Below the pieces are notes generated by a model, which saw nothing but the letters and a program-made list of their open reading frames with translations, had not been told where the DNA came from and did no database searches. Source: Podarcis bocagei (lineage: Eukaryota). Taken from it: a stretch of DNA of 64,000 nucleotides. Below are positions 3,577 to 45,200 of this stretch, in pieces. Made by a program: the position numbers and the translations under genes. The number at the start of each line of letters is the position of its first letter. Within the stretch, counting starts at the first letter, position 1. Where the stretch lies: NCBI GenBank assembly GCA_964188305.1, contig OZ076889.1. One strand, given 5' to 3'.

Positions 3577-4309
3577 TCCCATCCCCTCCCTCTGTTTTCA
3601 GAGGGCCTCAGAGAAAGAGTGAAGTTCCTGGGCAGGCTTGCCTCAGAGACTTCTGCCCCTGCAAAGCTGCACCCTTCTGCTTTGTAGCTCAGTGAATGTT
3701 AACACTGCAGTTCCCCAGGGGCTAGCCCCCAAAAGATATTTGAGGTTTCGTTGCACAAGCAAGGAGTCTGTTTGACAGAGCCACAATGGGCAGTGTGCCA
3801 GATCCTTATAGGTCCCTTTGAAGGCAGCACAAGCCTTTGATAGCTCCTCTGGGTTGTTGCTTTTTTCACCATTCCAGGCTGCATAATTATGTTCATTACG
3901 AAGAGGCTAGAAATCAATCTGAGTGGCTTACCTTTGAAGCTAGAAAATGGGTGGGGCACAAACCCAGATAAAAAGAAATCTAAGCCAAGCCACTTCCTTG
4001 TGGGAGTGTGCGTTCATGTGTCTGTGGTGAAACAATAAAATAGTGGCCATATTTATATGCTGTATGGTGCCTATAAAGCCAGCCAGAGCTGAAGCTATTT
4101 TTTTCTGAAAGGTCCCAGACTCTTAATGGACAATGGAAAAGTTTGTCAGCAAAGCGAGTTCCATGCTATGTAATGAGTGAGGGTGGGGGAAACTAACAAT
4201 GTACAAGGCAGCAATCCTACCCCCAATTTTCTGGGCACAAGGCACATTGAACTCAACAGAACTTGCTTTTGCATAGGCACACACATAGGAGTGTGCTGCA
4301 ATGTATTAC

Positions 4310-4608
4310 ATTCTGCCTGGACGCTGAGGTCCAGCGCCGAGGGCCTTCTGGCGGTTCCCTCATTACGAGAAGCAAAGCTACAGGGAACCAGGCAGAGGGC
4401 CTTTTCGGTAGTGGCGCCCGCCCTGTGGAACGCCCTTCCAGCAGATGTCAAAGCGATAAACAACTACCTGACATTCAGAAGACATCTTAAGGCAGCCCTG
4501 TTCAGGGAAGTTTTTAACGTGTGATATTTTACTGTATTTTTGGTTTCTATGGAAGCCGCCCAGAGTGGCTGGGGAGGCCCAGCCAGATGGGCGGGGTATA
4601 AATAATAA

Positions 4609-5530: not shown

Positions 5531-8500
5531 AAATAGAATACAGTATAAAACGTGAACAATAAATTCAGATTTATGAGAGTCTTAAAAGGTAATTTAAAGA
5601 GGACAACATACTATTGTCCCTGAAGGAACCTGAGAGAATGCTCTTTATTGTTATATAGTTGAATGGATAACTTAACATGAATGTAAATGCCCTTGATACT
5701 TCATGGTTCAGTCAGTGGTTCCCTGAAAGCCCAGATTCTATTCTTCTGTAGTTCACCTTTAAAGCACAGCAAGCCAAAGCACTGGAATCTAGGTTAGCTA
5801 GCCTTATAGTGTTACATAATAACAAGGCTATTATTATGACATCACTTAGTAAAAGCAACCACAGGGTTTTTTTTTATTTCAAGCTAATACGCATACTCAG
5901 ATTTAAGTTTTATTTTTAAAGATGCTTAAAAGGTCACTAGCCTCATGAAAAGCTCCATTTTTTCCCTAACAGCGGCTTAGCAGCCAAGTTTTAAATGAGA
6001 AATATTCCTGCTGCATCCATTAACCTTATCAGCTCTCATCTTTAGATTTTGCTTTCACTAAAGCAAAAAACAAAAACACAACCTATATGTTTGAAACTTT
6101 CCTGGACAGGCCTCTTTTACAGTTAAACTGTTCTAAAATGTTAGTATTGTCTGCCCCATGGGCATCAAGGGTCATTTTGCTTCTAGTCAAATTCCCTTAC
6201 AAAGCTGAGTTTGTCCTTCATTAGCAACAATGAGCTTGTTTTGACACTGTTATAAGTCAGCGGCCCCAGGTGGCATCTTCTTGTGTTTCTCTCTTCATAT
6301 TAACAGAGTACTGCAGTACAGGCAACAAAGAAGTTTGGGGCAGAGGCAAGACAGCCCATAAGGAGCCATCTTTCCTTAAGTACATTCCCCATATGCCAGT
6401 GCTGCTTCCTCCATATCCAGAACGTGTCCTAATACATGCCAAGATAGGGTTAGGGTCTAAAGTGGACTAAAGAGCTAATATTTTGTTCTACAATAAGTAG
6501 TAAAATTTATAAAAATTTATAATATTTAAAAATTTATAATATAATGTAAGTTCTACATGAGCACTATCCTACAATTGTATGCATATTCTCTACAATAGTT
6601 GATTACAATGCAAAGACAGACTAAATCAGAACAGACTGAAAAGTAATTTGGTTACCACAATTTTTTATTCCTTTCCATTTATAAAAAGTTTAAGTTCCAG
6701 CAAAACCCAGTGTTCCATCAGCTGAGCAGCATCAAATTTGTTGGCAAATACACACGATTTGGTCCCACAAATACAGTTAGTTACATGCTTTGTGACAAAC
6801 TGTGCTGTCTAGAGGTCATTAATTAAAGACTTCTCGGCCTATATTTCTCCAGCCCTAAAAACAAACCAGTGTGTTATGAGCAGCCCAGAACTAATAAGCT
6901 CTAGGAGCAATCACTGCTTGCCAGCACTCTTTGAACTATAATGGAGCATCTGTTGATTTAATCCCCTGTGGGCTAATTCCCCTCCCCTTGCCTTTAATCG
7001 TTTTTCCTTCTGAAGTGTTTTTACCCTGAAATTGGACATGCTGTCTACTGCATATGGCCCTTTGAGGGATTCCTCTTAACACAGGCTTCCCTAGTTGGTT
7101 TTGTATTTTGGGGTGGGGGGTGGGGTAGTAGGAGATACACTTTACTTAATGTTCTAACGTGTTATACACACAAGCTCCAGCTGCTACACTATATTGTCTG
7201 AATAAGATGGGGAACTTTATCAGTTGTAACAGGTTTTAATTCAGGCATTGACAAGGGAGGAAGCAGCAGCCATTGATGCAATTCCAGATCAGTAAACTGG
7301 CACCCAGTCTTCTGAAAGTCCAGACCAGGAGTTTAAGAATAACCATACTGTACAGGAAAGCTTTTAATGCTTACTCATCCAGGTCCGTCATATAATTCCA
7401 GTTTTTACAAGAGTTACCAGGTCCAGACCTGAATATCTTCTCCATAACTTTAAGAATTTTAGGATGTTGAGGTAGACAGGATCACTTTTGCTCAATACAG
7501 TGGGTGAACAGGCTGCCCTTTTCACTGGTATGGAGTACAACTTTCTACCAAGGCAAGAAAAAGCAAGCCAACAGTAGGGAAGAATGTGCCAACTGCTGCA
7601 CATTCTCATTATCCTAATTGTGCTGAAGAGCAGCAGGTAGCCCCCAAGTAGTGAGTGATTCCCCACCAATAAAGCTATGGCAGAAGGTATATTTTGTGCA
7701 GCAAATTAATGCAATGAAGCCCTTTTTATTTATTTTTAATGTGGAGGCTGCAAGTGTGAGGAGAGGAGTAATGGGAGCTACTTAACATTTTCCTTGCATG
7801 AGTTGTTTCCACTAAGTATTGCCCTCCACAGGTTTTCTGCATCTGGAGCTATGCATGTGTGTGTGTGTGTGTAGAATAGTTAGGGGGCATTTTTTAAACA
7901 AATAGCTGGCAGTCACATGGCCCCTGTCCCAATACTCCTCTGCTCAAAATGGCAGCATTCCACAGCTGCCTTTCAAATAAAATAAAAAAACCCAGGATTT
8001 TACTATATGCATTTCCTATATGTCTTGGCTAGCAAGTGGTTGATGGATCTCATTCTATGTGAGCTTCTTACTTAGTTTGAAAGTCTTTTTTAAGCTCAGT
8101 TGTGTAATTTTGTTTCAATAAAGTTCTGAAAACTGAGAAGGCAACCAAGACTCTTTGGTTCTGCTCCTACCGGTCTTATTCCCAGAAAGGACCTGATATA
8201 TGAAGGATATTTAACTAATGCGTTGAACTATATTATGCTTTGCCACCTGATTCAAAATTCAGAAACACTAATGCCACTACTACTCAGACCACTTTAGGTC
8301 ACTGGAAATCATAGCTCACCAGCAGTTCAACTGGCAAGAAGGGAAAAAAAGTTAGCTGCACAAAGTATTTCCCAGATAAGAGGATGCTCCCCACAGGTTT
8401 CTTATCACACAGCCAGCCTATCCTAGTCAACTGCTAATGTGGCACACCAGTGACTTGCCAAAGTTGTTTAACATACTATATGCTCCCTTCTTCAGTGGAC

Positions 8501-9152: not shown

Positions 9153-9289
9153 TTAAAGGTTACTCAAGTTGAGCTCAGGAGGAGTGTCAGTCAGCTCACT
9201 GCTGAGATCTTCTGTGTCCAGCGTGCCACCAGCTGCCCCTCCAGGGGTCTTCTTTTCCAGCTTCAAGCCTGGTATGGAAATCTTGTCAT
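9153..9289 (-). CDS. CCDC163: CCDC163-like coding exon 11 (last): DKISIPGLKLEKKTPGGAAGGTLDTEDLSSELTDTPPELNLSNL*
   Basis: Acceptor ttgtacttgtag, phase 1 matching exon 10, TAA stop at 9155-9153, and ATTAAA about 45 nt downstream. Confidence 0.75.
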
Positions 9290-9725
9290 CTACAAGTACA
9301 ATACAAAGTAATTAGCTGACTATTTTGTGGTTGTTGTTATAACATTTTGCAATTCAACAGTATAGAATTAATAAGCTAGAAAGAAGTGCTTTCAAAAAAA
9401 GAGGGGAAGTTTAAAAAAAATGAAAAGATTTAAAGAAAACTAGTAGACCACTTTTCTGAGCTACTATACAGCACCATATTTTTCCATACGTTAAAATTTT
9501 AATAAACAAAGTGTTCTCTTCCAGGACCAACACATGTACAGATGTTAAGTCTTGTATGCAATCATCCACAAACATCACCGTAGAGCCAGCAGTGAGTATA
9601 TCTATAAGCTTCCCTTTCATATTTATTACAAGTAGTGTCAAACCCATTTGTCAAGAGCTTCAGAAGAGTCTTCAAGCACCCAACTATGGAGTGATTGGTT
9701 TTCCTTTACAAAACCCAAAGGATTA

Positions 9726-10286
9726 CAGTGGTACCTCAGGTTACAGACTCCGCTAACCCAGAAATAGTACCTCGGGTTAAGAACTTTGCTTCAGCATGAG
9801 AACAGAAATTGTGTTCTGGTGGCGCAGTAGCAGTGGGAGGCCCCATTAGCCAAAGTGGTGCTTCAGGTTACGCACAGTTTCAGTTTAAGAACGGACCTTC
9901 GGAAAGAATTAAGTACTGTATTTTTTGCACCATAACACTCACTTTTTTCCTCCTAGAAAGTAAGGGGAAATGTCTGTGCGTGTTATGGAGCGAATGCCTG
10001 CGGGTGGCAGTCGTGAGCAGAGGATCCATGGTTCCCCTTCCTTCCCTCCTCCGTGGTTACAAAGCATGGATCCACATGGATCCTCAGGATTTTTGCATTG
10101 GGCTACTCCAAACTCACTGTCAGATCACATGTCTGTGGCCACAGCATGAACCACAAAAATCATATATCCACTATTTCGTTTAGAATATTTTTTTTCTTGT
10201 TTTCCTCCTCTAAAAACTACGTGCGTGTTATGGTCTGGTGCGTGTTATAGAGCGAAAAATACGGTACTTAACCCGAGGTACCACTG
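9726..10286. mobile_element. Tc1/mariner (Tigger-like) MITE containing a nested element
   Basis: TIRs CAGTGGTACCTC / GAGGTACCACTG flanked by TA on both sides, interrupted at 9916-10264. Confidence 0.85.
9916..10264. mobile_element. Nested Tc1/mariner (pogo/Tc2-like) non-autonomous element
   Basis: TIRs CTGTATTTTTTGCACCATAACAC / GTGTTATAGAGCGAAAAATACGG, with a TA duplication at 9914-9915 and 10265-10266. Confidence 0.85.
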
Positions 10287-10806
10287 TATTTGGCTCATCC
10301 CCTAGGCATGAGTTTAGAAGTGCAAAATCTTCTGGTAAAAGACAACTCTACAGAGGGAAACAGCTCTAGTAAAGATCCTTGAAAACACTTTGAGGGCACC
10401 AGAACAGAACACAGTAGAAATGTAGCAGCTTCCTTCAGAAAGACTGAGTCACTAGGATTAGGGTAGAGAAAAAGCAAAATGCAAAGAGGTTTAAAGAGAA
10501 TCTGTGCACAAGAATCTTAAGCATCTTAATGAAATAGGGTAAGAATTCCCCTGACGAGAATGTTAATCCCTTTATTCTCAAAACTGAGGGTTCCTCTATG
10601 TGGTGCAATATGGGCTTTGCTATTTCAGAAACAGAAGAAAAGTAAACACAGCAAGTAGTATTTTAAGTATCAATCCGTTCCTCTTCCAGGGTACTCTGGC
10701 AATGCTGCAATTCAAAATAAAAACTTGTAGAGATAAACTTCACAGCCCCAGAGCAATCACTAGGTAATGGTTTCAGTAAATATTTCAGAGTTACACCCAG
10801 GCTCAC

Positions 10807-10938
10807 CAGCAAGTTGTGCAATCTCTGGTTCACTAAAGAGTTCATCTGAGCTGACATCTGTGAGACTGAACTCAGAGGCTGAATCGTCACTGAGAAGGGA
10901 TGACAAGGTAGCATCATGCAGCAAAACTCTCTTTTTTC
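10807..10938 (-). CDS. CCDC163: CCDC163-like coding exon 10 (acidic, Ser-rich)
   Basis: ctttgtcccctag|GA...GCT G|gtgagc. 132 nt, phase 1-1. KKRVLLHDATLSSLLSDDSASEFSLTDVSSDELFSEPEIAQLA. Confidence 0.78.
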
Positions 10939-11739
10939 CTAGGGGACAAAGTTCAAGGCAGATTAGGGAGACTAGCAGCTCACTTAAAATTCTGAGCTTT
11001 GTCTCAAAGCAATGTTTACAACTTAGTAAATAACTGAGCTTGCCCTTACTGTCCAAAGTCCCAACGATTCAAGACAAGACCATGTATGCAATGCCAGTAT
11101 ACTTTTTTTTCTAATTAAGAGCTTTATTATTTCCATTTAAAATATGGCTGGCACCTGGGTTTATCTGTGGAAAGTGTCATGCATACATAGGGCAGGATTC
11201 ACCTTACAAGTCCTGTCAGTGGAAGCCTGTGCAAGGGGGCTTATCTTTTCCCCGAGCACTCCTGCAATTGGTTTCAGCAGCGTTGGGAGAAGCCCCAGGT
11301 CAGGGCATGGGGGAAGGAGAGAGGAATCGTTCCACCTGGTAAGCTGATATAGTGCGACACTGAATTCCTCCCAAAATGAGTAAAACTGAGAAAAGCGAAC
11401 TGCTTCTCTGACCATGTATATATTTTACAGGAGCAGAATATTTCACAGCTGAAGATGAGAGTCTAATGGGTTGTGCTGAAGCAACACTGGTACAATGAGG
11501 GCCATTTTACACAATGTTATATTTTCCTTCAAAAAGTTAATATATCCATAGCAAAAAGCAAATACTCTTTCATGCATCTGAGTGCTTATTTTGCAACAAG
11601 ACTGACAAATGGATGTGCAGCAGCTGCCCAGTCCACACACTTGCAGCAAAATGAGCCCTCATGCCACACTTCCCATGTGCACCCATTTTCCTAATCAGAG
11701 ATGCTCTCAGTGTCAGGTGTTCTAAAAACAAGCACTTAC

Positions 11740-11834
11740 TTAGACAGAGGTTTTTGTCTCTTAGTGGACCAGCGTAGAGTTCATCCTCCAAGTGCAGACC
11801 TTTCACCTGTTCTTTTAGGTCAGTAACTGTACTT
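11740..11834 (-). CDS. CCDC163: CCDC163-like coding exon 9
   Basis: tttgttttaatcag|A...CTA A|gtaagt. 95 nt, phase 2-1. STVTDLKEQVKGLHLEDELYAGPLRDKNLCL. Confidence 0.8.
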
Positions 11835-12497
11835 CTGATTAAAACAAATTCAAAAGCCCACAGAAATTATTAGTGCAGATGGAAGAAACATATTTATAAG
11901 AGATGAGGCACTCTTGCACCTCATAAATCTGAGCGATGCAGTCAAGTAAGCTCATAACAGCTCTGTGCGATTCACTTAATGTCCGAAAGTATCCGTAGGC
12001 AGTGAAATAATCAAGCCTTCAGTTAAAATGAAAATGCTTGATGAGCTAATGAAAAGCAAGCCATGACTGACTTCAGTGACAGAGCAGCTAAGTTTATTTC
12101 AATGATATATTCAATGGCTTCTCTGGTGTTGCTTACTTAGAATCATTCATAGGTTTGGGAGGAAGACAGGGAAATAAGAGGAACTAGAGAGAAAAGAGTT
12201 TGATCCTCGGAATTCAAACCACTATAATATGACACAGTCACTACAGGTTCTGTGAACCTGGGTGATAATTGCTGGAGAATGTTCCTTCATTCCCAAGAGA
12301 TGAATACTAGGAAATGGACATGTACTGTGCCACTCAGTACATCCCCTCTTATAAGATCCAGGCAGTTCATGGATAAGATTATCAATGTCTACTAAGTCAT
12401 GATGCCTATGTACTACCTCCAGTCCCAGATCACATGCAGAAATGTGCTATTGAACTCATGTCCTATACTTGTGGATTTCCCATAGCCATCTGGTTGA

Positions 12498-12911
12498 TAG
12501 GGCTGGGGAAGAAATTCAATTCACTTTGCATTCAAAGGCAACCTTATCTAATTCAGATTTTCCAAAAAAATATGAGAACTGAAATCCAACCATATTTCCC
12601 AATTTGTGCTCCTCCAATTTTTGCAATGAAGTTCCCCAGGCCAGTAATGTGTACAAAAATGCACATACTAAGGTAAAGTGTGCATACAAATGCATATGTT
12701 ATGGAAAATAACATACAAAAATGTGTATATTATGCAACATTGCATATAAAATGTACATATTACTTAATAAATAAAATCATACTAACACTCTGATTAATTT
12801 TCATGAGGGTTTTTTTGGCGGGGGGAGATGAAAACTGACGTAGAAATGTGAAGAACTGAACTTAAGTATGGAAAAACAGGAAACTGAAATTGACATGTCT
12901 GTCCATCCCTA
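12498..12911. mobile_element. hAT (Ac-like, TAGGG termini) non-autonomous element inserted in a CR1 3' end
   Basis: Ends TAGGGCTGG / CCATCCCTA with a perfect 8-bp TSD ctggttga (12490-12497, 12912-12919). The flanks (~12365-12497 and 12912-12987) rejoin as a CR1 3' UTR. Confidence 0.8.
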
Positions 12912-13676
12912 CTGGTTGATCACTGCAAAAACAGAATGCTGGACCAGTCAGACCTCTAATCTGAACCAGCAGGGCTCTTAGGTTCTTACAGTTCAAGGCA
13001 AAAGCTATAAAATGCAGCAAGGCAAAAAAGCAAATACTTAATCTCAGTGAAAGGGGACAGAAACAGGAATTAGTGGACAGAGGTAGCTGATGTTTGAAGT
13101 GGCATGTTTGTGAGCTCTCTTGATAGAAACCGCTCTCTAAACAGCACCGTGTATCATCAGATTCACTGGGCTCGTTCCCAAGTTAACTTAAGGAAGTTCA
13201 CAGAAGGAAAGTTTCCTGCCTTCTCCAGCCACCTGTGCTCCCTGAAAAGTCAGTCTGGGAGGTCAGGAGCCCTCTTGAGCAATGTGGGATGGGTGAATCA
13301 CCCCAAACCAGGATTGATCTCAATGGGCTCAATGTAAAGTTAACAGAAGGAACACTTCCCTTTCTCTTTTCCCCAGCAGTCCCATTTCACATTGCTCATG
13401 AAGAACTGACCCTACACAGAAGCTGTTTGGGCCTGGGCTGGGGTGTCAAGTGGCTATAGGGAGAAGGGGATGGGAAACATCCAAACCATTGGGTGACTAG
13501 GGCAGCCTTCCTCAACCTGCTACCATCCTGTCTGGTCAGGAATTAGTCCAAACCCTCTGGAAGGCCCCAGATTAGGGAAGTCTGGTTTGGGAAGAAAGCA
13601 AACTGCTAGCCTTCTGCAGCACCTTCAAAGATTCCTGTCTCATCATTGCCTTTTTGGAGACTAATGCAATGAATAG

Positions 13677-13694
13677 GAGGCCCTCTGGTGGACA
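13677..13694 (-). promoter_or_regulatory. Candidate CTCF site
   Basis: The reverse complement TGTCCACCAGAGGGCCTC closely matches the CTCF core CCACCAGGGGGCGC. Motif match only. Confidence 0.35.
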
Positions 13695-13840
13695 ATTGTC
13701 TACTAGCAACCATCTACAACACCATTTTTGAATAAGAGAAACAGTGGTAATAATTTAGCAACCATGCATGTCTCAATCCTGCATTGAACCACGGGCAGCT
13801 ATCAAGTGAAGCACATACAGCATAACATGTGTTTCCCTAC

Positions 13841-13941
13841 TTGACATGACTAAGTTCCTTCTGAGTGCTCTGGGTCTCAATCCTAGCTTTGTCCAAGTCC
13901 TTAGTCTGAGCTTTATGACTGTCCTTCAGATCTTCCAGCAT
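13841..13941 (-). CDS. CCDC163: CCDC163-like coding exon 8
   Basis: tcttcttattcccag|ATG...GTC AA|gtaggg. 101 nt, phase 0-2. MLEDLKDSHKAQTKDLDKARIETQSTQKELSHV. Confidence 0.82.
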
Positions 13942-14682
13942 CTGGGAATAAGAAGACAGATAACTATGGTTTTAACCTAAGCTTTTAGGGTTAATTTTGT
14001 TTTTAAAAGAAATTCCCCCCACAAAAAAAACATAAGCAGGGAGTTAAGAGTGTTTTGGGTATTTGCTTGTTTTTTAGTTTTTAAGTATATCCATAGTTTC
14101 CCAGTGATGTATTCTGCTGCAGAGATTAGCATATACCCACAGACAGAAGCAGAATGGCAAACACATGTGACCATATTCCTAATACCACTGCACTGGTTTT
14201 TCCAGGCTAGGGAAGCACAGCACAGTGGTATAATGACCTTAAGAGGTGCCCACAAGTTTCCACAATGTTTGGAAGCAGTACTAAGTCATTAACTATGTTT
14301 TAAGCGAATTAGGCTGTGAACAAGCTAAGCATCTGTGTATACAGCTGTAACCCTCCCACTTGACTCCTCCCTCCATGAACAAAACAAACAATGAAATCAT
14401 TTTGCATTCAAACCAGCACTTCTGGTTTGTCTCCAAATAAAACCTCACAATTTGAAGCCAAGGTTAAATCATTACTTCCCAATAGTGGTTTGTTTGCTCT
14501 AAGCCCACACTCTATTTTAATGTGAAAGCCGGAAAGGCAGGACATACATCAAGACTGATGGTGGTGGCTACAGTTCAGGAATCTTTCCATAGCTTAAGAA
14601 ACCATCATTAGGGAAGGAAGAGTATTTAAACAAGTGGCATCAAAGGTGAATGACTACTTCTTGAACTGAGTATTTGCTAGAG

Positions 14683-15161
14683 CAGCAGGTGGGGCAAATC
14701 TTGGCCAACCAGGCAATTTTCCACAAACCATGCCCACCAGTCAATCTGCTGACAAATCCGAGTGGCATCAGCTGATTGTCAGGTGGGCAGGGTTCAATTC
14801 TGCCTTGGCTGCGCAAACAGGTACTTGCAACCCTTTACTTCTCAGCTGATAAGCAAAGCTTAACTCCTTCTCATGTTGGCTGTATGAGCAGGCACCACAG
14901 TCAAGGCAAGCCAAAAGGAAGGTGCTTTTTATGAGCATTGAAAGAAAGGAAGAGAGTTTTCACAAGCCAAGGCAGAGTGCATGAGGGAAAAGGCCTTTGC
15001 TTGCAAAATGGCCCTTTCTTCATTTCCTCCTGGACGCAAGGATTTTCGCAAGTGGGCAGGACACTCACCTGTCAATCATGTAACATGTCATAGAATTGAC
15101 GGGTAGGTTGTTGACCTGCGAGGAGGTACCAGATAAAGCAAAAAAAGGTTCCTCACCCCTG
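14683..15161. mobile_element. hAT (Charlie-like) non-autonomous element
   Basis: CAG...CTG termini with degenerate TIRs and a perfect 8-bp TSD tgctagag (14675-14682, 15162-15169). Confidence 0.75.
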
Positions 15162-15352
15162 TGCTAGAGTCATCTAGCTTGTAGGTATAGTGTAATCTTG
15201 TTCTAATCTTTCAGTCATCTCTGTCTTGTCTGTCCAATATATTTTAGATATCTGGGGTAGGGACTGCATCCCCCCTTCATGTTCCATGCTGGGCCTAGGA
15301 CTACTAGCACAAAGGGAATGGGTAGCAGCAGGGAACCTTCTTAACAACGTAC

Positions 15353-15429
15353 CTGACAGTATCTTCTTTGAGTCTTCTTTATCTCATCAGTTGCAGACAC
15401 TTGGTGGAACAGATCATCCTCTTGTTGAT
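15353..15429 (-). CDS. CCDC163: CCDC163-like coding exon 7
   Basis: ttgcaccctttag|AT...CAG|gtacgt. 77 nt, phase 1-0. QQEDDLFHQVSATDEIKKTQRRYCQ. Confidence 0.85.
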
Positions 15430-15574
15430 CTAAAGGGTGCAATAAGCCATGTCATTTTCTCAATTCTGTACATATTTCTCTCTTCCCAATGAGGCCCACA
15501 GGGCACATAGCCTTTATCCCAATAGTTATTACAGGACAGAGGCCAGGGGAGCAGGAGCATCAAGTAGTACTTGC

Positions 15575-15642
15575 CTAGTTTGTGCTTCAGGTGTTCCATC
15601 TCTCTTCTGATGCACTTATATTCTTGCCACAAGATTTTCTTA
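15575..15642 (-). CDS. CCDC163: CCDC163-like coding exon 6 (GC donor)
   Basis: ttccttcttactctag|T...CTA G|GCAAGT. 68 nt, phase 2-1. KKILWQEYKCIRREMEHLKHKL resembles recalled human CCDC163 [20 protein letters not shown]. Confidence 0.85.
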
Positions 15643-16177
15643 CTAGAGTAAGAAGGAAATCAGGAACAGAATTAAGACAACAGGGATCACTTTTCTGGAT
15701 TTACTGCAAAGTCCATTCCAAAATCAGCTGTTTTAAAACATTAACAGTTTTGAAATTTATGGAATTGGCCCCATGCCATTCTGATTCCCAGAGAAATGGT
15801 AAGATAGAGCTCAAGCATGCTTGCATTGTTGGCTTTCTATAGGCTAGAAATCAGTGAAAAATATATTGCTAACCTACAGGGGTACACTCAGGTAACACAA
15901 TTCACTACAAGCAAGTGGTTATTAGAACAGCAACTGTTATTCTTCCCAGCACAGCAGCAACCCCATTCAAGAAAACTTGGCAGAGGCCACAGTTCATTCA
16001 AGTCTTTGAAGACATTCTCAAATTGCAAATGACATGCCAACTTTCTTCTAGCAATTAATGATCTGTAGTTGACACTTGGAAAAGTACTGTTCTTTGTCCA
16101 TCACCACACTATCCCACCCATCTCGAACATCCCTATACATAAAGCAGTTACTTTCACTAGATAGCTCAATTGCTGAC

Positions 16178-16358
16178 CTCTCCCGCATATCTTGCATGAT
16201 GCCAGGGTTGGAAAAAGGATCAGGAGTACAGTCACCATCTGACTGCTGAAACACTTGCTGCCGAAGGCTACGGAACTCAGTCTTCAGCCCTTCCATCCTG
16301 ACTCCCAGCACTGAGTCTAAGCTGCCATGAGAATTGTGTTGCAGTCGATCCACCTCCT
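16178..16358 (-). CDS. CCDC163: CCDC163-like coding exon 5
   Basis: ctacttcatgttgcag|AG...GAG AG|gtcagc. 181 nt, phase 1-2. EVDRLQHNSHGSLDSVLGVRMEGLKTEFRSLRQQVFQQSDG...MQDMRE. Confidence 0.82.
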
Positions 16359-17154
16359 CTGCAACATGAAGTAGGACAGGACGAAATTAGCCAATAGTAT
16401 TCCCCTTGGCTGTTGTGGAGATACAGTGACATTGATGCCCATTCACCGTTGGTGCACGGCAGTCTGTTAACCACATTCAAGAGAGGTTTGTCCCCATCAG
16501 AATACCATGGAGCTGGCAAGAGTGCTGACAGACATAAATGAAGTGTGGATTCAAGTATGAGGAAGGAGGGAGGAGGAGAAGTGGCTGGATTCTTAGGTAC
16601 CATGACATATTTCTCATAACAGGGTTATCAGCTAAGCAAGAGAAGAATCTTCCAACAGTTTCATTGGATTTTTGTTCATTTCTGGGTCCAATTCAAAAAT
16701 GCTAATTATTATCACTCACTAAAATCTGCTGGAGGGGCTCTCCTTCATGTCTCAGTGATGAATTATGTTAGGCTGGACTACAGCACAAACCCTCTCTGCA
16801 GTTGCACCAGCTATGGGGAACTTTTTTTATGTCCACCCTGCTCCATCCCATCAGCTTCTAAAGATGACTCTTTTGGGAGTTGTTGATGTTTGAAACCTCC
16901 TGAACTGAGGCATTTTCTCTGCATGCACGCTCTCTCCCATATTGTGCTTTTACCTTGTATTTTTCTCAAACTGTAATTGTAAGCTGCTTTGAACATTTTA
17001 ATACAAAAAGCAAAAATAGAAAAATACACGTTTTAAGTAAAATAAATAAAACTTGTGCTCTTTTAGGTTTAGAGATGAAACGTTTCAACAGATCAGTAAT
17101 GGGAGAAAGGGCAGTCTGGCAGAGGCAATGCCAAACTGGACAAATCTCTCATAC

Positions 17155-17236
17155 CCTCTAGGTGACTGATACTCTGCTGCTGCAGTTCCTTCTCCTGTTT
17201 CAGCCGATGTACTGCCTGGGTGAGGGATTCTATGAC
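17155..17236 (-). CDS. CCDC163: CCDC163-like coding exon 4
   Basis: ttctcttttctttctcttag|GTC...GAG G|gtatga. 82 nt, phase 0-1. VIESLTQAVHRLKQEKELQQQSISHLE shows a heptad pattern. Confidence 0.85.
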
Positions 17237-17384
17237 CTAAGAGAAAGAAAAGAGAACCAGAGTCATGGGAACAGCAAATACCATCTAAGCAAGGAGCTCT
17301 CAAAACCTTAGGCTGGAACATAATATACTAGAAAAACTAATCCTAACCAAATTGTTGGTTTGAGAACGTGTATTATTTCCTGTT

Positions 17385-17595
17385 ACATGATTTAAATCTC
17401 ACATTCCCTTCAAGGAGCAGGGGTTGGGATTCGTGGAATTCCCCACTATTCTAACTTCACGACAATCCAGTGATGCAGACTAAATTGAGGCACAATGGCT
17501 AGCCAAGGTCTCACAGCGAGTTTTATGCCTGAACAGCAATTTACAACCCAGATCTGTCTGCTTTAAAGTTCAACCATCTACTGTATGGCACTATC
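17385..17595 (-). mobile_element. Degenerate MIR/Ther1-derived SINE
   Basis: Reverse-strand similarity to the SINE at 46341-46520 (ccaaggtctcacagcgagttttatgcctga...). Confidence 0.5.
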
Positions 17596-17711
17596 TTCTC
17601 ATGTGGAAGACTTTGCATGTGGTTTTGCTGGTGTATGCACCCAGATGTATTAGCAAATCTTTTCTCTACACCATAGCATAGTAGCTTGTGCATCATTTCA
17701 GCGTCACTTAC

Positions 17712-17872
17712 CTGGGCTTGGGAATGCAATTGCTTGCTGATGGCAGAAAGCTCCTCAGCAGCCATTCTACAGCATGAGTGAGCTCCACATGTGAAATGCA
17801 GGGGTGGTGGTCCAGTCTGTTGCTCAGTCAGAGCAGCACCCTCAGTATTTATTTTGTCTAGCAAGAGATCAG
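17712..17872 (-). CDS. CCDC163: CCDC163-like coding exon 3
   Basis: ttcctttccatcccaacag|CT...CAG|gtaagt. 161 nt, phase 1-0. DLLLDKINTEG...MAAEELSAISKQLHSQAQ. Confidence 0.82.
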
Positions 17873-18633
17873 CTGTTGGGATGGAAAGGAACAAACCTGA
17901 CTGATCCACCTAGTATGGAAACTGTCAAAAGTATCTACCTACATTGCTTGCTCTCTAAATCACCTCAATTGCACCCTTCAGCCTACTCCGCTGTGCTATT
18001 TCTTGTCCATGTGTGCTCTTGGACATATAGCCCCTGGGTGTGGAATTCTTTCCTTTTAAGTATTCAGCTTGTTACCTCTTTCTCTCACTTTTAAGAAATT
18101 AAATTATTCTCTTGGGAGTCTATGGGATTCCAACCCTCTCCCTACTCAAAAGTTAATTATTGTAGGCTTTTAACTCTTTCCCCTTTTATACTACCTCCCT
18201 GTGATTCGGGCAGGAATTTGCTATACTTTCCTGCTTCACCTCATGCATATTAGGTGCTTTTATAAATAACAACCAATGGTGTAGAAGTGAGTTTACGACC
18301 ATTTTTTAAAAAGCAAAGCCAGAGTTGGAAAGGGGAGAAAACAGAGGTGGGGGTGGATGTGTAGGTTCAAAGAATCACCTCGCTGGACCAGACCCAGCTC
18401 CATCTAGCCTTTCATTCAGTTTGCAGGAGCAGCCAGTTAGTTAGATGCCTCTAAGTGCTTATAAGCAATACATGAAGGCAATTGCCTTCTCTCACTGTTT
18501 GCTCCCAGGATTTATATACACTAGAATCAGTAAAGAGCTCTCTAATCTCAAAACTTCAGAAATTTAAAGTATTAAAGAGATGTTTCTTTCTGCAAAAGGT
18601 GCTTTAGAATTATACAATGCAGATCATTCTTAC

Positions 18634-18667
18634 CTTTGGAAGAGATGCTGGCAGTGTTCAGACGTTG
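18634..18667 (-). CDS. CCDC163: CCDC163-like coding exon 2 (34-nt micro-exon)
   Basis: cttctgtttttgttccag|CAA...AAA G|gtaaga. QRLNTASISSK aligns with recalled human QWLYPLGVST. Confidence 0.8.
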
Positions 18668-19284
18668 CTGGAACAAAAACAGAAGATGGGACAGAAAGTT
18701 ATAACACTGTTTTGAATAAACAGTGGAAAGATTAACACTTGAATGTATGAATGCACATTGCTTCCACCGAGGGATGCTACATGAAATTTAAGTTAGAAAG
18801 TACTGCATAAACACTTGGAGAGGCACTGGCAAGACAAAATGTTCTCATTCATCATTATAGTGCCTTCAATGGACATGACAGTAAAACACAAAGCAAGGTA
18901 AATCTGCACAATGTCTTAATGCCACATTTTCCAGGCAACGACAGCAATTGTCATTTGCTAACTTGGCCAAAGATCAAAGAAGCATTCCCATACCTTTATT
19001 TATAAGATTTCAAAGCTGCTTTTTAGCTGCCATACCCAAACTGGTGTACAAAATAGTCAATGTATCTTAAATTCACAGGCTAAAAATAGCAAAACTATGA
19101 TAGCAATACAAGCCCAGAACTAAACAGTTTAACAGCAAGAACCCAGGTAGTAAGGGTGATTTCTAAAAGCAGAAGAAAATTAATAAAAACGCACAAAAAT
19201 GGTTTTACCTGTATCCAGAATGTCATGGAACAGAGTCAAATGAACAGCACTTAGAAGTTAGCTCCAAAGCTCAGAAAAACCCTG

Positions 19285-19627
19285 CAGATCCACATGGATC
19301 CTCAGAATTTTTGCATTGGGTCACCCCAAATTCACCATCAGATCACATAGCATGTCCATGGCTACAGCCTGCACCAAAAACACACACACATCCACTGTTT
19401 CGTGGGGCCGCAATGGCACAAAAACATAGTTACAAAGCATGGATCCACAGGATTTTTGCATTGGGCTACCCCAAACTCACCGTCAAAACACATGTCTGTG
19501 GCTACAGTATGAACCACAAAAATCATACATCCACTGTTTTGTTCAGAATATTTTTTTTCTTGTTTTCCTCCTCTAAAAACTAGGTGCGGCTTATGGTCAG
19601 GTGCGTCTTATGGAGCGAAAAATACAG
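19285..19627. mobile_element. One-ended copy of the Tc1/mariner element seen at 9916-10264
   Basis: Shares ggatcc...gatttttgcattgggctaccccaaactcac... and the right TIR (ttatggagcgaaaaatacag+TA). It carries two internal repeat units and lacks the left TIR. Confidence 0.8.
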
Positions 19628-19834
19628 TAATAGCCACCTTTAACAATCAGCAGCAAAACACTCAGCAGATTTTATTAAAGATTAGTTCTTGGAAACTATC
19701 ATCAACACATTTCCCCCTTGCAGAACACAACTTTGGTGTGATCAACTTTTAAATATTTAGCAGCATACACACCCCTTGTTCAATTACACTAGACACTTTT
19801 CTTCAACCAGTATGTTGCTCCAAACAAAACTTGC

Positions 19835-19900
19835 CTTAATTTTTGCCATGTTGCTGTCTGCTGCAGTCAAGAGAGAGCTGAGCTGTGTGTCCCAATCCAT
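19835..19900 (-). CDS. CCDC163: CCDC163-like coding exon 1 (MDWDTQLSSLLTAADSNMAKIK; GC donor); full CDS 1134 nt, 377 aa
   Basis: ATG in strong context (aacagcATGG) and donor AAG|GCAAGT. The peptide resembles recalled human CCDC163 [21 protein letters not shown]. The gene is head-to-head with MMACHC, as in mammals. All 11 exons join in frame. Confidence 0.8.
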
Positions 19901-20279
19901 GCTGTTAGCAAAAAGGTGTTTTAACAACTCACTGGCTGCCCAACTGTAACCTGGGAAGAGTCCTTGGCTAGAAAGAAATTCCAGCAGGAGAGAGGAACGC
20001 CTGCAAAAGCAGCAGGAGACGGTTTATTTTTCTCCCGTGAGCAACGCTGAATCTCATCATAGCAAAGGAGGGGTGGGGTGGGGAAGGTACAGACTTGGAA
20101 ATGCAGACACTTTTGCAGAAAGACTGCCTAACAAATTTCCTTCACACCACACACAAAAATGCCTCTTAAGGGAATGCAGCATCAGACACCCAACATCTCT
20201 GGGACAGATTCACAAGCACATTTTAACTACTGTGCAGCATATGCACTAACAGTTTAAAGAGCACAGCTCTAAAGCACAA

Positions 20280-21310
20280 CGCTCCGGAGGCCCATAAACT
20301 CTTTCAACGATAGACCACGGCTCTCTAGGGGCAGAGATAACCAAGCAGTTCCTCAGCAGAGGGGAAATTGAAGCGGAGGCGCCCTCTTCCCACCCTCGTC
20401 CTTAGAGACTGCGGCCAAGAGCAGCCCCTCCAGGGAGGTCGCTTCCTGGTGCCCAGGACACGTTCTGGAGCGCTGGGCGAGAGGGTCTCCCTCGGCCGGT
20501 CCCACAAGGGAGCGAGGAACTCCCCGCCCGCTTCAACCCAGCCACGGCCGGTGGTGGCTCCAGTCTGGAGGGCTGGCTCAGGACCCACGTCAGCCTCCCC
20601 GCTATGAGGACACCCAAGCCAGGCCCCACTCACTAGCGCTCCCGGCTGCCCCGACCAAACGGAGGCCAAGGGAATGGAGGGCCGGGGGCGAAAAGCCACG
20701 CCGGCCTTGCCTGGACCCGCAGCCAGACCCCCTCTCCGAAGGCAAAGGATTCGAACACGCACGTCCGAAACCGCTAAAAACCCCGAGGCAGGTTCCGCCT
20801 TCCGCTCCGCCGCGGAGGTTTCTGGAGAGGAAAGTCCGTAAGGCCCAGCGGCTACTGTGAGGGGGGACGTCACCAGGACTGCATTTCCCGAAAGGCTCTT
20901 CGTGCCCCAAAGAGCGGGGTGTCGGGAAAAAGCGTCCCCGTTCCTTATTGGGAGAGGCGCGCGGCCCGTCGCCGCGGCAGCGAAACGAGCTGCCAGCGGG
21001 AGGGAGGGAGGACTCGGCTCTCGTGTCCGGCGCGTGGTGTCCGTCCGCCTTACCTCATGGGAAACTACATTTCCCACAGTGCTCCGCGCTTATGCTATGA
21101 TGGAGCTACGCGTGGTTGAGCTGGAGAAAAGGATCCGAGATCACTTGGAGAAGCTGGGTTTTGAAATCCACCCGCTTAAGGTACTGCAGGAGGGGTGCAG
21201 AGTTGGGGAAAGGGAGTCGAAGCGAGGAGGGGGAAATCATCGGTTTCTTAATTGCATGTGCTTATTCAGACATATGGTTGGCATGCTGGTAGGGCAGAGC
21301 GGCGTTGCAT
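20280..21310. promoter_or_regulatory. CpG island / bidirectional promoter CCDC163-MMACHC
   Basis: GC- and CpG-rich. ZNF143/THAP11-type motifs ACTACATTTCCCACAGTGC (21064-21082) and ACTGCATTTCCCGAAAGGC (20878-20896), a CRE-like GACGTCA (20866-20872), and a reverse CCAAT (20947-20951). Confidence 0.85.
21100..21180 (+). CDS. MMACHC: MMACHC exon 1 (MELRVVELEKRIRDHLEKLGFEIHPLK)
   Basis: Homologous to human [27 protein letters not shown]. 81 nt as in human, donor AAG|gtactg. An in-frame ATG also lies at 21097. Confidence 0.93.
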
Positions 21311-24390: not shown

Positions 24391-25246
24391 AAGCTCCATT
24401 GTTCATTTTGCTCTTACTTATTTCCAGGTAGTACTTCCAAAACCCTTTTTGTGGTCTCCTGCTGCTCATGACCCCTGCTGCTTGTTCTGCCTTCTAGTTG
24501 CTGATCTTTGGGCATGAATCACATGGTTAAACTGCAGGCCCTAGGCTTCTTGTTTGCTGCTGCTCACAACCCTTGTGACATCATAAGGAGCAGTGATGCT
24601 GTGTGATTTTAGCCTATGTCAGAGGTTGGACTGTGAACTCTAAATTTATTGAGCTCAGTTATTGCAGTCTTAATTTCTCTACAGCAATTTGATGGATGGT
24701 AGAAATCAGAATTCAGCTGAAGTTTCCATTTTATTTTATAATGATTATATTTTATTGGTTTTGTAAGTAACAGTAGGCCAAAGCCTTGCCCACTGGTATC
24801 ACATGACATCATATCACATTAGGTGCCAGGCAGGTAAAGCTGCAGTGCCAGATTGAAAAGGAAAAATTAGAAGGACACTCTAAAGTGTGCTCATTATTCT
24901 TCCTTTGCAACCACAGATTTAAGGTTGAATTACCTGCTTCTTGCATCCCCCCGCCTTTGGAAAAACAACAGCAAGTTCTCAGTCCTTTGAAAATCTGAAA
25001 CCTTGAGAAACGCAGTGAAGCACAATTATGCAACTCTTTGTACGGTAATTTGTGTTGCTTTCTATGTGGTGTTGTTGAGTTTCCTTGAAAGACTCACAGA
25101 GTTCCAGGTAGGGAGGTAAAGACATGTGAAGACTGATTGATTGATTTGCTTCTAAAAGCTGTATCTTAAAACCTACATTGCTCAGAGTGTACTCCTATCA
25201 GTTTCCAGAATCCAGGCTAACTAATTATATTTTCTCTGTTCTGAAG

Positions 25247-40479: not shown

Positions 40480-42270
<1,791 letters not shown>

Positions 42271-45200
42271 ACGGGCTGCCCTTTCATTCCCCTCCCTCCT
42301 GTCAAATGCCATTCCTCTTTCCCCTCCCCCCCATACTGTATCCTTTTCCTCGATCTCCTTCCCTCTCTCTCTCTCTCCACCCCCAACCTGCCTTTCCCCC
42401 TATTCTCTCGCTTGGTCCCTTATCTCTGCTGCTGCTTCTGTGCTTTAAGACCCTGAAGATTTCCCTCCTCCAACAATCGCAGCCTTTTGTCTGGTCTGTT
42501 TGCTGCTTGACAGTATCCCCACCACCACCACCACCACCCCGGAGGGCGGAGGTTGGAAGGGAGAATGAGAGGGTGTCCCCTCTGCTTTGTGGCGGGCTTG
42601 AGAAGGAGCCGGCTTTGATCTCTCTTCCTTTTCCTAAAGTAGGGATGTTGCTGTGAAGGAGATGTTGGGGGGAAGTGTTCCAAAGGACGTAGGCAGCTGC
42701 CAGCATCATAGAGACCTGAACTTGCTTTGGGAAAGGATTCGAACTTTTTTGTCAAAACGCCTCCCCCTAACGTTGCCTGTTTCCAAAACCCTTCTCTCCC
42801 ACCCGTGGGTTAGAGAAGGACCAAACCCCACGCCCAAACATCAGAAGATGATGTCTGTAGGGAAAGCTGGGTTAGGACACCTTGCAACGCATTATTGCTC
42901 CTTGCCTTTAGAAAACTCTTATTTGCTTTTAAAATGAAATAATAAATAGCCTTCTATGCAAATACTTGAGAATCTCATTGAACATAACAAATAGGGTTAT
43001 TTTAGGAGGAGTGGGGGAACCAAAGTAATGTATAATGTATAACTTTTGCTAGTGCCTGAATGTTTGGAATTTTGTCATCATGGCATTCCATTTCTTGTGT
43101 GAGTATATGCGTGATATAGATTCCATTGGAAACTGAAAATGGAAATGAAGTCCTTGACTTTATTGACATTCAACACAAGGGTTATTATTATGAGCCTTGT
43201 CAGGGGATTCGTAAGTCTGAGTGAGTGACAAAGGTTGTTTTCCTCCCATCCTATTTCCCTCCTGAAATCTGCTTTTGTGAAACGCTAGAAATAATCTGTT
43301 TCACATTGTTAGTGGAGGTGAATGAAACGAGTGTTCCCATTAAACTGATATTCTGTTATAATTTTGTTTTGCACATTTGAAATGTAAATTCATTTTATGC
43401 CGATGCCCATTGCCATGTATAAACGTCTTGTTAGGTCCCCCCAGATGTTTTAAGAAATGTTTTACTCTTATAGACAGTATGTGTGGCTATTCCACCCTCC
43501 TCTTGTAGAAAAATAGGAGTTAGTCAAATTTATTTGCAAAAAAAATAGTCATCACAAAAATACAGGCATAATCAAGCTGAAAGATGCAGTGCTCAGCACA
43601 ATTTAAGTGGTTGTACAGATTTTTATATATCTACACATTCCCTTAAAAAAGCCTCCTCTGGAATGCTTACACCTTTTAACAATACATAATTAAATTATAT
43701 ATATTTTTTCACACAAAGGGCTCAGTTATCCACTATGACTAAAATAATAGGTGGTTGTAGGAGTAAAGAGCTGAAATGGCAACATGAAACAATGTTGTGA
43801 GAAGAGAAGTAAGTCTATGAAGAATCTCTGAATATGATTTGACTGTGGAGTTTGCAATCCTTGGATTACAGAACATTTACATCTGATATGTACTTCAACA
43901 AGAACACAAATGGTTTATTAAACTTCATATCAAAATAGGTATGAAATCAACTGTAGATTTTATAATGGATGACTCATTGACATGTGAATGTGAGGACTAG
44001 AGGTTTTTGGACTGATTTGGTACGGCAAATTAAGAAACACTGTTGTTTTTTAAAGAATTTATGATAATAATGTGAGCAACCGAGTGCAAAATTCTGAATA
44101 AATAATTCTTAGTATTTATTGAATTAGAAATATAGAAGCCTTTGTAACTTATTTTGTACTGTATTATCAGTATTTACTGCAGCAGCTGGAGTGTTTCCTT
44201 CAAAGATGACTTTTCTTAAAATACTTGGGGCGGGTAGGAAAGTCGAGGATTTTGTGAACGACACAGGGAAATGGTGAAGGAAAGTACACACAAAGCTGCA
44301 GATGGAATGCAACAATTTTTAGACTGAGAACAGACCAGTTTATCTAGGCCCTCTTCCATTGATATGTCTTTGCCGTATCATGGTTCCATGACTAGATAAA
44401 GTAGCCTCTTGCAGCTTGTAGTTCGCAACAGGGCACCTGATTTTGTCAGGTACGATGCTGCATAAATGCAAAATTTAGCTGCAAACAGAATACCTATCCA
44501 ATGTAAATATAATGTTTTTCTAATACACCACTAGTATCAGGAGGGTGGGAAAGGGAGTTTTTTCTTATTGAACATATGGAAATATTCCATAATATAGGAA
44601 TGGCAACCTTTGCTGCAGTTACCGACAATAAGAAGTTGTCAGCTTCCATTGATGTTCTCCCCCTCTCTTTTTAAAGTTTACAAGCCATAGATAAATTTAT
44701 AACAGGGCTGGAGAATGAGATGAAAGACGGCTGATTTAATAGGGAAAGGAGTTGGTGCACATTTGCATAATACTGTAAGCCCTTTCTTAGAGAGGAGCTG
44801 AAAGAGAATTTAAATAAAACAAAATGCTCTGAAGTGATGAATGTTTATCTCATGCAGATGGTGAGCATAATAGTTTCCATATCTGTACTGGTAACCACAT
44901 CTACTAATGTGTAAGATAGGGTAAGCCTTACCAACAAAGAGGTTTGTTGGTCTTGGAAGCATTTGCATTGAAATTGGAACTTTGATGCTGTGATGTATGA
45001 GAGCCTTTATGTTTTAAGGGAAAATATATACTGGCCACGAAATAAATAAAAAAAATGTTAAGACCATCTGTAGCTCTACTTTTTTGTATGTTCATAATAT
45101 GATCCCATCCATTCATTGCATTCTTTGATGTCTGTGCATACTTGTTAAAATTGTATGGATGCAGTTAATATTGTTTCAGGACATCCAATGGATATTTCAA

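Follow-up and report, generated by a model that had tools for sequence, protein, structure and literature searches.

A conserved 377-aa coiled-coil gene divergent from MMACHC in Podarcis bocagei, with the position of human CCDC163 and a probable kinship to CCDC159

Which vertebrate gene is encoded by an 11-exon coiled-coil reading frame lying beside MMACHC is the question raised by a 64,000-nucleotide stretch of the Podarcis bocagei genome (assembly GCA_964188305.1, contig OZ076889.1), referred to here as the window. An initial annotation had named the gene CCDC163 and read it as an intact, full-length paralogue of CCDC159. The best explanation taken jointly, which we consider probable, is that the minus-strand region from 9153 to 19900 is a functional gene whose 11 coding exons specify a 377-aa protein, a member of a vertebrate family, the positional orthologue of CCDC163, a probable paralogue of CCDC159, and a coiled-coil scaffold.

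Gene model and splicing

The 11 coding exons splice to 1,134 nt, encoding 377 aa plus a stop (Table 1). All of the exon lengths initially proposed, which sum to 1,134 nt, could be placed on the minus strand with the frame open, and every peptide block that had been quoted from the lizard protein was found in the translation. Acceptors are AG for all introns, and the donors of exon 1 (at 19835) and exon 6 (at 15575) are GC (gcaagt) instead of GT. Lacerta, P. raffonei, Elgaria, gecko, tiger snake, and kiwi also have the exon 1 GC donor; at exon 6, Lacerta, P. raffonei, Elgaria, and Notechis have GC, and gecko, kiwi, and shad have GT. Exon 10 was placed with acceptor cccctag/G and donor G/gtgagc because only that version was gap-free against the 377-aa proteins of Lacerta agilis and Rhineura and matched the Lacerta model. 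An alternative at 10926 to 10795, with the same 132 nt and the frame kept, was rejected since it left gaps against every orthologue. Exon 1 extends upstream as 5′ untranslated region to at least 19949, with contigs running through that position; the closest in-frame stop upstream of the ATG lies at 20026 to 20024, with no in-frame ATG in between. A second candidate polyadenylation motif, AATAAA, occurs at 7729 to 7734.

Transcript evidence for the junctions, which the initial annotation had proposed as a check, was recovered for introns 1 to 6: in four presumed RNA runs, each from a different study, spliced contigs join the exons at the predicted bases (18667/19835, 17872/18634, 17236/17712, 16358/17155, 15642/16178, and 15429/15575, the last with GC..AG intron ends on the minus strand). 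For junctions 7 to 10, the support comes from identity with the Lacerta model and from phases that kiwi, shad, gecko, snake, and Elgaria share. One contig match ends precisely at 15353, the edge of exon 7, and the contig record has 131 more letters beyond the compared stretch.

Table 1. Coordinates of the gene and flanking features in the window
Feature	Position	Strand	Length (nt)	Phase	Remarks
Exon 1, coding part	19835..19900	-	66	0	ATG 19900-19898; 22 codons, MDWDTQLSS...; GC donor AAG/gcaagt below 19835
Exon 2	18634..18667	-	34	0	
Exon 3	17712..17872	-	161	1	Predicted disordered linker and start of first long helix
Exon 4	17155..17236	-	82	0	Highest conservation, IESLTQ...QQ..I..LEEEV
Exon 5	16178..16358	-	181	1	
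Exon 6	15575..15642	-	68	2	Second GC donor, CTAG/gcaagt
Exon 7	15353..15429	-	77	1	
Exon 8	13841..13941	-	101	0	Length and sites as in Lacerta and P. raffonei
Exon 9	11740..11834	-	95	2	Predicted second long helix ends here
Exon 10	10807..10938	-	132	1	Acidic Ser-rich tail, motif SLTDVSSDEL
Exon 11, coding part	9153..9289	-	137	1	Includes stop TAA (9153-9155); conserved C-terminal ...PELNLSNL
Candidate polyadenylation signal ATTAAA	9103..9108	-			44 nt past stop; motif only
CpG-rich intergenic region, gene to MMACHC	20300..21100				G+C 0.62-0.69, CpG observed/expected up to 1.14; presumed bidirectional promoter
ZNF143 (SBS)-type motif ACTACATTTCCCACAGTGC	21064..21082	+			In shared promoter; motif match only

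A conserved vertebrate family beside MMACHC

The lizard gene belongs, as an unexceptional member, to a conserved, uncharacterized vertebrate family already predicted by RefSeq. A total of 151 retrieved proteins matched at E < 1e-10. The closest relative, isoform X1 of Lacerta agilis LOC117048455 (P0012; 377 aa, 94.7% identity), equals the translation of the Lacerta gene model, and the window protein is gap-free over 377 aa to both P0012 and P0001 (E = 0). With exon 5 as the query, 377-aa relatives with identical residues at positions 116 to 174 were retrieved. Identity to the window protein is 83% in Rhineura and 66 to 76% in the other squamates that aligned full length; measured against the Lacerta protein, it is ~60% in turtles, 48 to 50% in ratites, 37% in the salamander, and 27 to 35% in fishes, dropping as phylogenetic distance grows. 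Family proteins are about 375 to 400 aa long, and every search returned one gene per species across teleosts, sturgeons, gar, coelacanth, salamander, tuatara, turtles, crocodilians, ratites, and squamates. No mammalian sequence, placental or other, came back among the matches listed in the family searches, and neognath birds and frogs were likewise absent from them.

Exon phases (0,0,1,0,1,2,1,0,2,1,1) are the same in all seven loci solved (window, Lacerta, shad, kiwi, Elgaria, gecko, and tiger snake). Columns conserved at ≥80% among 120 sequences comprise MxWD..LSS at the N terminus, IESLTQ / LEEEV.RL in the center, SL..(V)SSD.L in the tail, and L.L.[DN]L at the C terminus, all of which are in the window protein. 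No Pfam family matched, a fold search gave no match, and no solved relative was found among 177,635 distinct sequences of the Protein Data Bank. RefSeq predictions of the 377-aa type exist for the sister genus and for dozens of reptiles, turtles, crocodilians, ratites, and fishes, usually labeled "uncharacterized LOC" and sometimes "CCDC159(-like)."

The family gene stands head-to-head with MMACHC in the window, where MMACHC starts (MMELRVVELEK...) on the plus strand at about 21097, and in seven of seven outside loci, from shad to kiwi. Human CCDC163 and MMACHC are likewise divergent and share a bidirectional promoter (PMC9020039), and a ZNF143 site has been reported in the human CCDC163 promoter (PMC11754675). 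The core of the window motif, GGGAAATGTAGT, is kept intergenically in P. raffonei, Elgaria, gecko, and tiger snake, and with one mismatch (GGGAAGTGTAGT) in Lacerta. By its sequence the motif is a candidate ZNF143 site. Since the gene is divergent from MMACHC over a CpG-island promoter at all seven outside loci, it is the positional orthologue of human CCDC163, and the identity first proposed for it holds by position. The arrangement of this promoter, which in humans is the site of the epi-cblC epimutation, proves as old as bony vertebrates. An orthology anchor and a name are thereby available for a conserved vertebrate gene labeled inconsistently in databases.

Probable relationship to CCDC159, competing readings, and constraint

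The initial annotation had aligned the lizard protein colinearly with human CCDC159 in three blocks, the human fragments, unverified, being its own. Against a family profile built without those fragments, two of them scored 31.0 and 26.3 bits and fell, in order, on the profile's two most conserved parts; colinearity stood for these, whereas the third scored −0.7 bits (19 of 1,000 shuffles equal or better) and was not significant. As controls, shuffled fragments reached at most 11.3 bits, reversed fragments at most 1.9 bits, and unrelated natural coiled-coil proteins stayed below 0; the best of the Protein Data Bank sequences, scored on a closely related family profile, reached 18.7 bits. Orthologues in five species are named "CCDC159(-like)" by NCBI or depositors, without the "-like" in Apteryx (kiwi, by NCBI) and Pangshura (by the depositor). 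Such automatic names are weak evidence, because other orthologues bear unrelated coiled-coil names (Spindly, SAS-6, golgin, and dynactin). Judged from the names and the two fragments so quoted, homology of the family to CCDC159 is likely, and the lizard gene is probably its paralogue.

The gene could instead be the orthologue of CCDC159 itself, in which case mammalian CCDC159 would represent this gene after a move or a copying event to 19p13, and the MMACHC bidirectional promoter would give rise to human CCDC163 as a residual or unrelated transcript. The plain names in Apteryx and Pangshura fit this reading, as does the absence of any match named CCDC163 among the family matches listed. So does the finding of no second, more distant family member for any non-mammal where all matches were listed, but distant paralogues escape searches of the word-indexed kind used here, and one family search listed 120 of its 268 matches. 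A chromosomal position of the CCDC159 type was not found: the gene adjoins MMACHC in every species examined and is therefore at most a paralogue, not an orthologue, of CCDC159. The MMACHC-adjacent position is that of CCDC163, whereas CCDC159 lies at human 19p13.2, beside TMEM205/PLPPR2; human CCDC163 may also resemble exons 1-2 and 6-7 of the lizard gene, as the initial annotation proposed. We regard orthology to CCDC159 as unlikely.

Generic coiled-coil similarity might also account for the likeness to CCDC159, leaving the family as an orphan vertebrate gene without a recognizable paralogue. The erratic automatic names, the failed third block, and the unverified state of the human fragments are compatible with this, but the scores and order of the two longer fragments on the most conserved parts of the profile, set beside the reversed, natural coiled-coil, and Protein Data Bank controls, make it distinctly improbable.

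A decaying or nonfunctional locus, hinted at by a 216-aa RefSeq model of Podarcis raffonei (P0056) that reads past the exon 6 donor and by low-depth contigs from introns, is contradicted and can be set aside almost entirely: in the P. raffonei genome every one of the 11 exons is intact, with just 5 amino acid differences from the window protein, the GC donor is used in spliced contigs of all four runs at several-fold greater depth than the intronic contigs, and omega across seven sauropsids is 0.356 (lnL −4579.9 versus −4652.3 with omega fixed at 1). The 377-aa gene is under purifying selection. The dN/dS estimate and the search for frame disruptions in a related lizard, both suggested at the outset, thus agree with the original description of an intact coiled-coil protein with an acidic tail, now seen to be spliced and constrained. 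The two conserved GC-AG introns have led to at least one truncated RefSeq model, that of P. raffonei.

Returning to the preferred reading of a CCDC163 positional orthologue and probable CCDC159 paralogue, a fuller history can be proposed tentatively: the gene may be the ancestral full-length CCDC163, an ancient duplicate of CCDC159 kept as one intact copy with the MMACHC bidirectional promoter since before the teleost-tetrapod split, with later decay or loss in placental mammals, perhaps also in neognath birds and frogs. The two may be ohnologues, products of whole-genome duplication, in the 1p34/19p13 paralogon that the initial annotation invoked. If this history is right, the sperm-neck or centrosomal function would fall to CCDC159 alone where CCDC163 decayed, and hundreds of erratically named entries (Spindly, SAS-6, dynactin, CCDC159, and others) would be misnamed CCDC163 orthologues.

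Predicted architecture and comparison with known systems

Structure modeling predicts a conserved N-terminal helix (MxWDxQLSS..., residues 3 to 27), a disordered linker, two long helices (66 to 152 and 166 to 278) of the type that pairs into coiled coils, and a disordered acidic Ser-rich tail in which two short motifs are conserved, SLxDVSSDxL and, at the C terminus, ELxLxDL. The protein is most likely a dimeric coiled-coil scaffold or adaptor, to which the tail motifs would recruit partners. CCDC159 is a mouse spermatid-neck protein that is required to attach the sperm head to the tail, and the loss of which leads to acephalic sperm (PMC12901780). Because the lizard gene is a probable paralogue of this protein, a centrosome- or sperm-neck-related role would be the best guess by analogy. 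The gene offers a full-length relative for the study of CCDC159-type proteins at the sperm neck, and current understanding is not overturned by it.

Lacerta agilis LOC117048455 has all 11 exons and splice sites in common with the window gene, including both GC donors, differs by substitutions only, and is likewise head-to-head with MMACHC. Human CCDC163 (formerly CCDC163P, 1p34.1) has the same position and orientation and a CpG-island promoter shared with MMACHC, and both promoters have a ZNF143-type motif, a candidate in the window. It differs in that the window showed no PRDX1, the other neighbor of MMACHC in humans, and probably in the length of its protein, put at about 145 aa in the initial annotation versus 377 aa in the lizard. 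For CCDC159, homology is probable across the two best-conserved coiled-coil blocks, as judged from the quoted fragments; its neighborhood is of the 19p13.2 type versus the MMACHC-adjacent one of the lizard gene.

Gene model, transcripts, and selection

The eleven-exon gene model is real. The initial annotation had listed eleven exon lengths for an intact, spliced 377-aa gene, and all eleven could be placed on the minus strand between positions 19900 and 9153, which confirms that observation. Acceptors are invariably AG, the reading frame is open throughout, and translation ends at a TAA stop (9153-9155). Shifting exon 6 four bases further on, to 15638-15571, would supply a GT donor at the cost of the reading frame. 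Exon 10 has two 132-nt placements that both preserve the frame; the one at 10926-10795 introduced alignment gaps against orthologues and was rejected. With the placement adopted here, the window protein aligns gap-free to the Lacerta agilis LOC117048455 isoform X1 protein (P0012; 94.7% identity) and to a Rhineura floridana protein (P0001; 83%). Since the first in-frame stop upstream lies at 20026-20024 with no intervening in-frame ATG, and the ATG at 19900 is retained in relatives as distant as fishes (MxWD...), this ATG is the start. A splice acceptor AG immediately before it is unused, as contigs continue past the ATG and reach at least 19949.

Positions of selected features of the 377-aa gene and its neighbor in the window
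Feature	Position	Strand	Remark
Exon 1 donor		-	GC donor; exon ends AAG, then gcaagt
Exon 6	15642-15575	-	GC donor; CTAG, then gcaagt
Exon 10	10938-10807	-	Sole placement aligning gap-free to P0012 and P0001
MMACHC start (MMELRVVELEK...)	about 21097; second exon near 25240	+	
ZNF143-type candidate motif ACTACATTTCCCACAGTGC	21064-21082	+	In the promoter common to the gene and MMACHC

At the Lacerta agilis locus, all eleven exons recur without change in length or splice sites, both GC donors included, and their translation matches the deposited P0012 exactly. All eleven are also intact in Podarcis raffonei, with five amino acid differences from the window; DNA identity of about 96% over most of the gene region marks this species as a congener. 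The RefSeq P. raffonei model (LOC128415123; P0056) has only 216 aa because it reads through the exon 6 GC donor, while the locus itself (L004, 10001-20335) would encode 377 aa.

Transcript support for the predicted junctions covers introns 1 to 6, which were joined at the predicted bases (18667/19835, 17872/18634, 17236/17712, 16358/17155, 15642/16178, and 15429/15575) in contigs from four public runs in four studies. Contig depth was 19 to 162 over exons, several-fold higher than in intronic contigs (3 to 16). The four runs are only presumed to be RNA, but exon-joined contigs are what transcripts yield. The gene is also under clear purifying selection: dN/dS was 0.34 between the window and Lacerta, and omega was 0.356 across seven sauropsid sequences (365 codons; codon model GY+F3X4), with the log likelihood dropping from -4579.9 to -4652.3 when omega was fixed at 1.

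An interspersed repeat in intron 1 (19150-19750) had summed contig depths of hundreds to over 13,000 in the four runs, and intron 10 holds a related copy (9950-10260); both contain GGATCCACATGGATCCTCAGGATTTTTGCATTGGG. An open frame at 4177-4524 on the plus strand ends in QRAFSVVAPALWNALPADVKAINNYLTFRRHLKAALFREVFNV and looks like the product of a common squamate interspersed repeat, not a host gene.

A conserved vertebrate family

With P0012 as the search proxy for the spliced window protein, the gene proved to be an ordinary member of an uncharacterized but conserved vertebrate family, and one that had been predicted before. Members come from squamates, tuatara, turtles, crocodilians, ratites, a salamander, coelacanth, gar, sturgeons, and many teleosts, with one gene per species among the matches listed, isoforms and two paddlefish (Polyodon) proteins aside. 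The proteins are mostly 370 to 400 aa long, and identity declines with phylogenetic distance. The coding sequence is divided among eleven exons, in the phase series 0,0,1,0,1,2,1,0,2,1,1, in lacertids, Elgaria, gecko, tiger snake, kiwi, and shad alike, and exons of 66, 82, 77, and 101 nt are identical in length in all of them. The exon 1 donor is GC in all sauropsids examined and GT in shad; at exon 6, gecko and kiwi join shad in having GT, and lacertids, Elgaria, and the snake have GC.

The family members listed, more than 150 in number, include no mammal, neognath bird, or frog, in searches whose detection is limited by a word index and length windows. For mammals, this holds for word-indexed searches with the single protein, with a 240-aa profile (120 of 268 matches listed), and with a 196-aa profile meant to admit short mammalian proteins. 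An exhaustive HMMER search with exon 5, the longest exon and among the less conserved, returned only squamate relatives and unrelated coiled coils. The non-appearance of these groups, at most a lead, could reflect lineage-specific loss or strong divergence, or be an artifact of word indexing and length limits.

In Pfam, neither single exons nor full-length orthologues matched a family; all that came up was coiled-coil noise below threshold. A profile search of the Protein Data Bank found no solved relative (best match, 18.7 bits), a fold search reached TM-scores of at most 0.49 by query and 0.41 by target, and ESM Atlas feature searches returned only the family's own clusters among the matches listed. 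The AlphaFold model of the Lacerta protein (106-sequence alignment) has a confident N-terminal helix (residues 3-27) followed by a disordered linker, two long helices at 66-152 and 166-278 in which pLDDT mostly exceeds 90, and a disordered tail (279-377). The tail is acidic and serine rich, with two short conserved motifs, SL..VSSD.L and, at the C terminus, L.L.[DN]L; no hydrophobic segment is apparent by eye. The best-supported reading is a dimeric coiled-coil scaffold, in which the N-terminal helix and tail motifs would bind partners.

Probable kinship to CCDC159

The initial annotation had aligned the lizard protein with three fragments given as human CCDC159. Scored against a 120-member family profile from which those fragments were absent, block 1 gave 31.0 bits (profile positions 73-114) and block 2 gave 26.3 bits (positions 162-196), colinear with block 1; the score of block 3 was not significant. 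The best of 1,000 shuffled controls reached 11.3 bits for block 1 and 6.4 bits for block 2, reversed controls reached 1.9 and 0.3 bits, respectively, and unrelated natural coiled-coil proteins scored below 0 bits. When 177,635 distinct Protein Data Bank sequences were scored against a closely related family profile (A4), the highest value was 18.7 bits. If the fragments are accurate, the family is homologous to CCDC159. Automatic names also favor homology, but weakly: CCDC159 or CCDC159-like is the name given to the orthologues of Apteryx, Pangshura, Carettochelys, Tiliqua, and Pleurodeles, but many others bear unrelated coiled-coil names such as Spindly, SAS-6 homolog, dynactin subunit 1, and trichohyalin.

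Paralogy to CCDC159 is likely, if unproven. CCDC159 and CCDC163 are probably already grouped together in protein-family databases; if so, the paralogy would be known at the database level. The literature yielded the two genes together only in one unrelated paper, as gene names, and nothing on the database families PTHR34533 and IPR039284 or on tryptic peptides of the fragments. A possible ohnologue origin (1p34/19p13) would agree with general knowledge of that paralogon; the pair may instead have arisen later, by a duplication or relocation within the mammalian lineage.

Mouse CCDC159 is located in the spermatid neck, and its loss leads to type 2 acephalic sperm (PMC12901780). By analogy with CCDC159, the most likely guess for the lizard protein would be a role at the centrosome or sperm neck.

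Position beside MMACHC and the shared promoter

The ATG of the 377-aa gene is separated from the MMACHC start by 1.2 kb, with a CpG-rich stretch between. The same head-to-head pair is found in Lacerta, P. raffonei, Elgaria, Eublepharis, Notechis, kiwi, and shad. Humans have CCDC163, formerly CCDC163P, in this divergent arrangement, with a bidirectional CpG-island promoter common to it and MMACHC (PMC9020039). Given this layout, the lizard gene is the positional orthologue of CCDC163, and orthology by position is well supported. The kiwi gene called CCDC159 by NCBI (L002, 10344-19382) also lies head-to-head with MMACHC, i.e., in the CCDC163 position.

A GC-rich open frame at 41235-42092 on the plus strand lies inside a large CpG island (41100-42700) and looks like exon 1 of a ZSWIM4/5-type gene.

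The candidate motif in the common promoter is one that we take to be of ZNF143 type. Every squamate checked (L001, L004, L005, L006, and L007) conserves the core, GGGAAATGTAGT when read on the gene's strand, in its intergenic region, with one mismatch in Lacerta (L001), and kiwi has a weaker copy of the motif. On the minus strand the motif translates as (M/V)GNVV, which accounts for the long, spurious extension ("MGNVV...") predicted at the N terminus of P0005 from Vipera latastei. The corresponding upstream start in the window (21077) was rejected, its codon being a GTG inside the motif; the ORF behind it is GC rich and without protein-level conservation.

The human layout is MMACHC-PRDX1, whereas no PRDX catalytic motif occurs anywhere in the window, so that gene order differs from that in humans. 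A ZNF143 site has been reported in the human CCDC163 promoter (PMC11754675), and the lizard promoter has its own candidate, ACTACATTTCCCACAGTGC.
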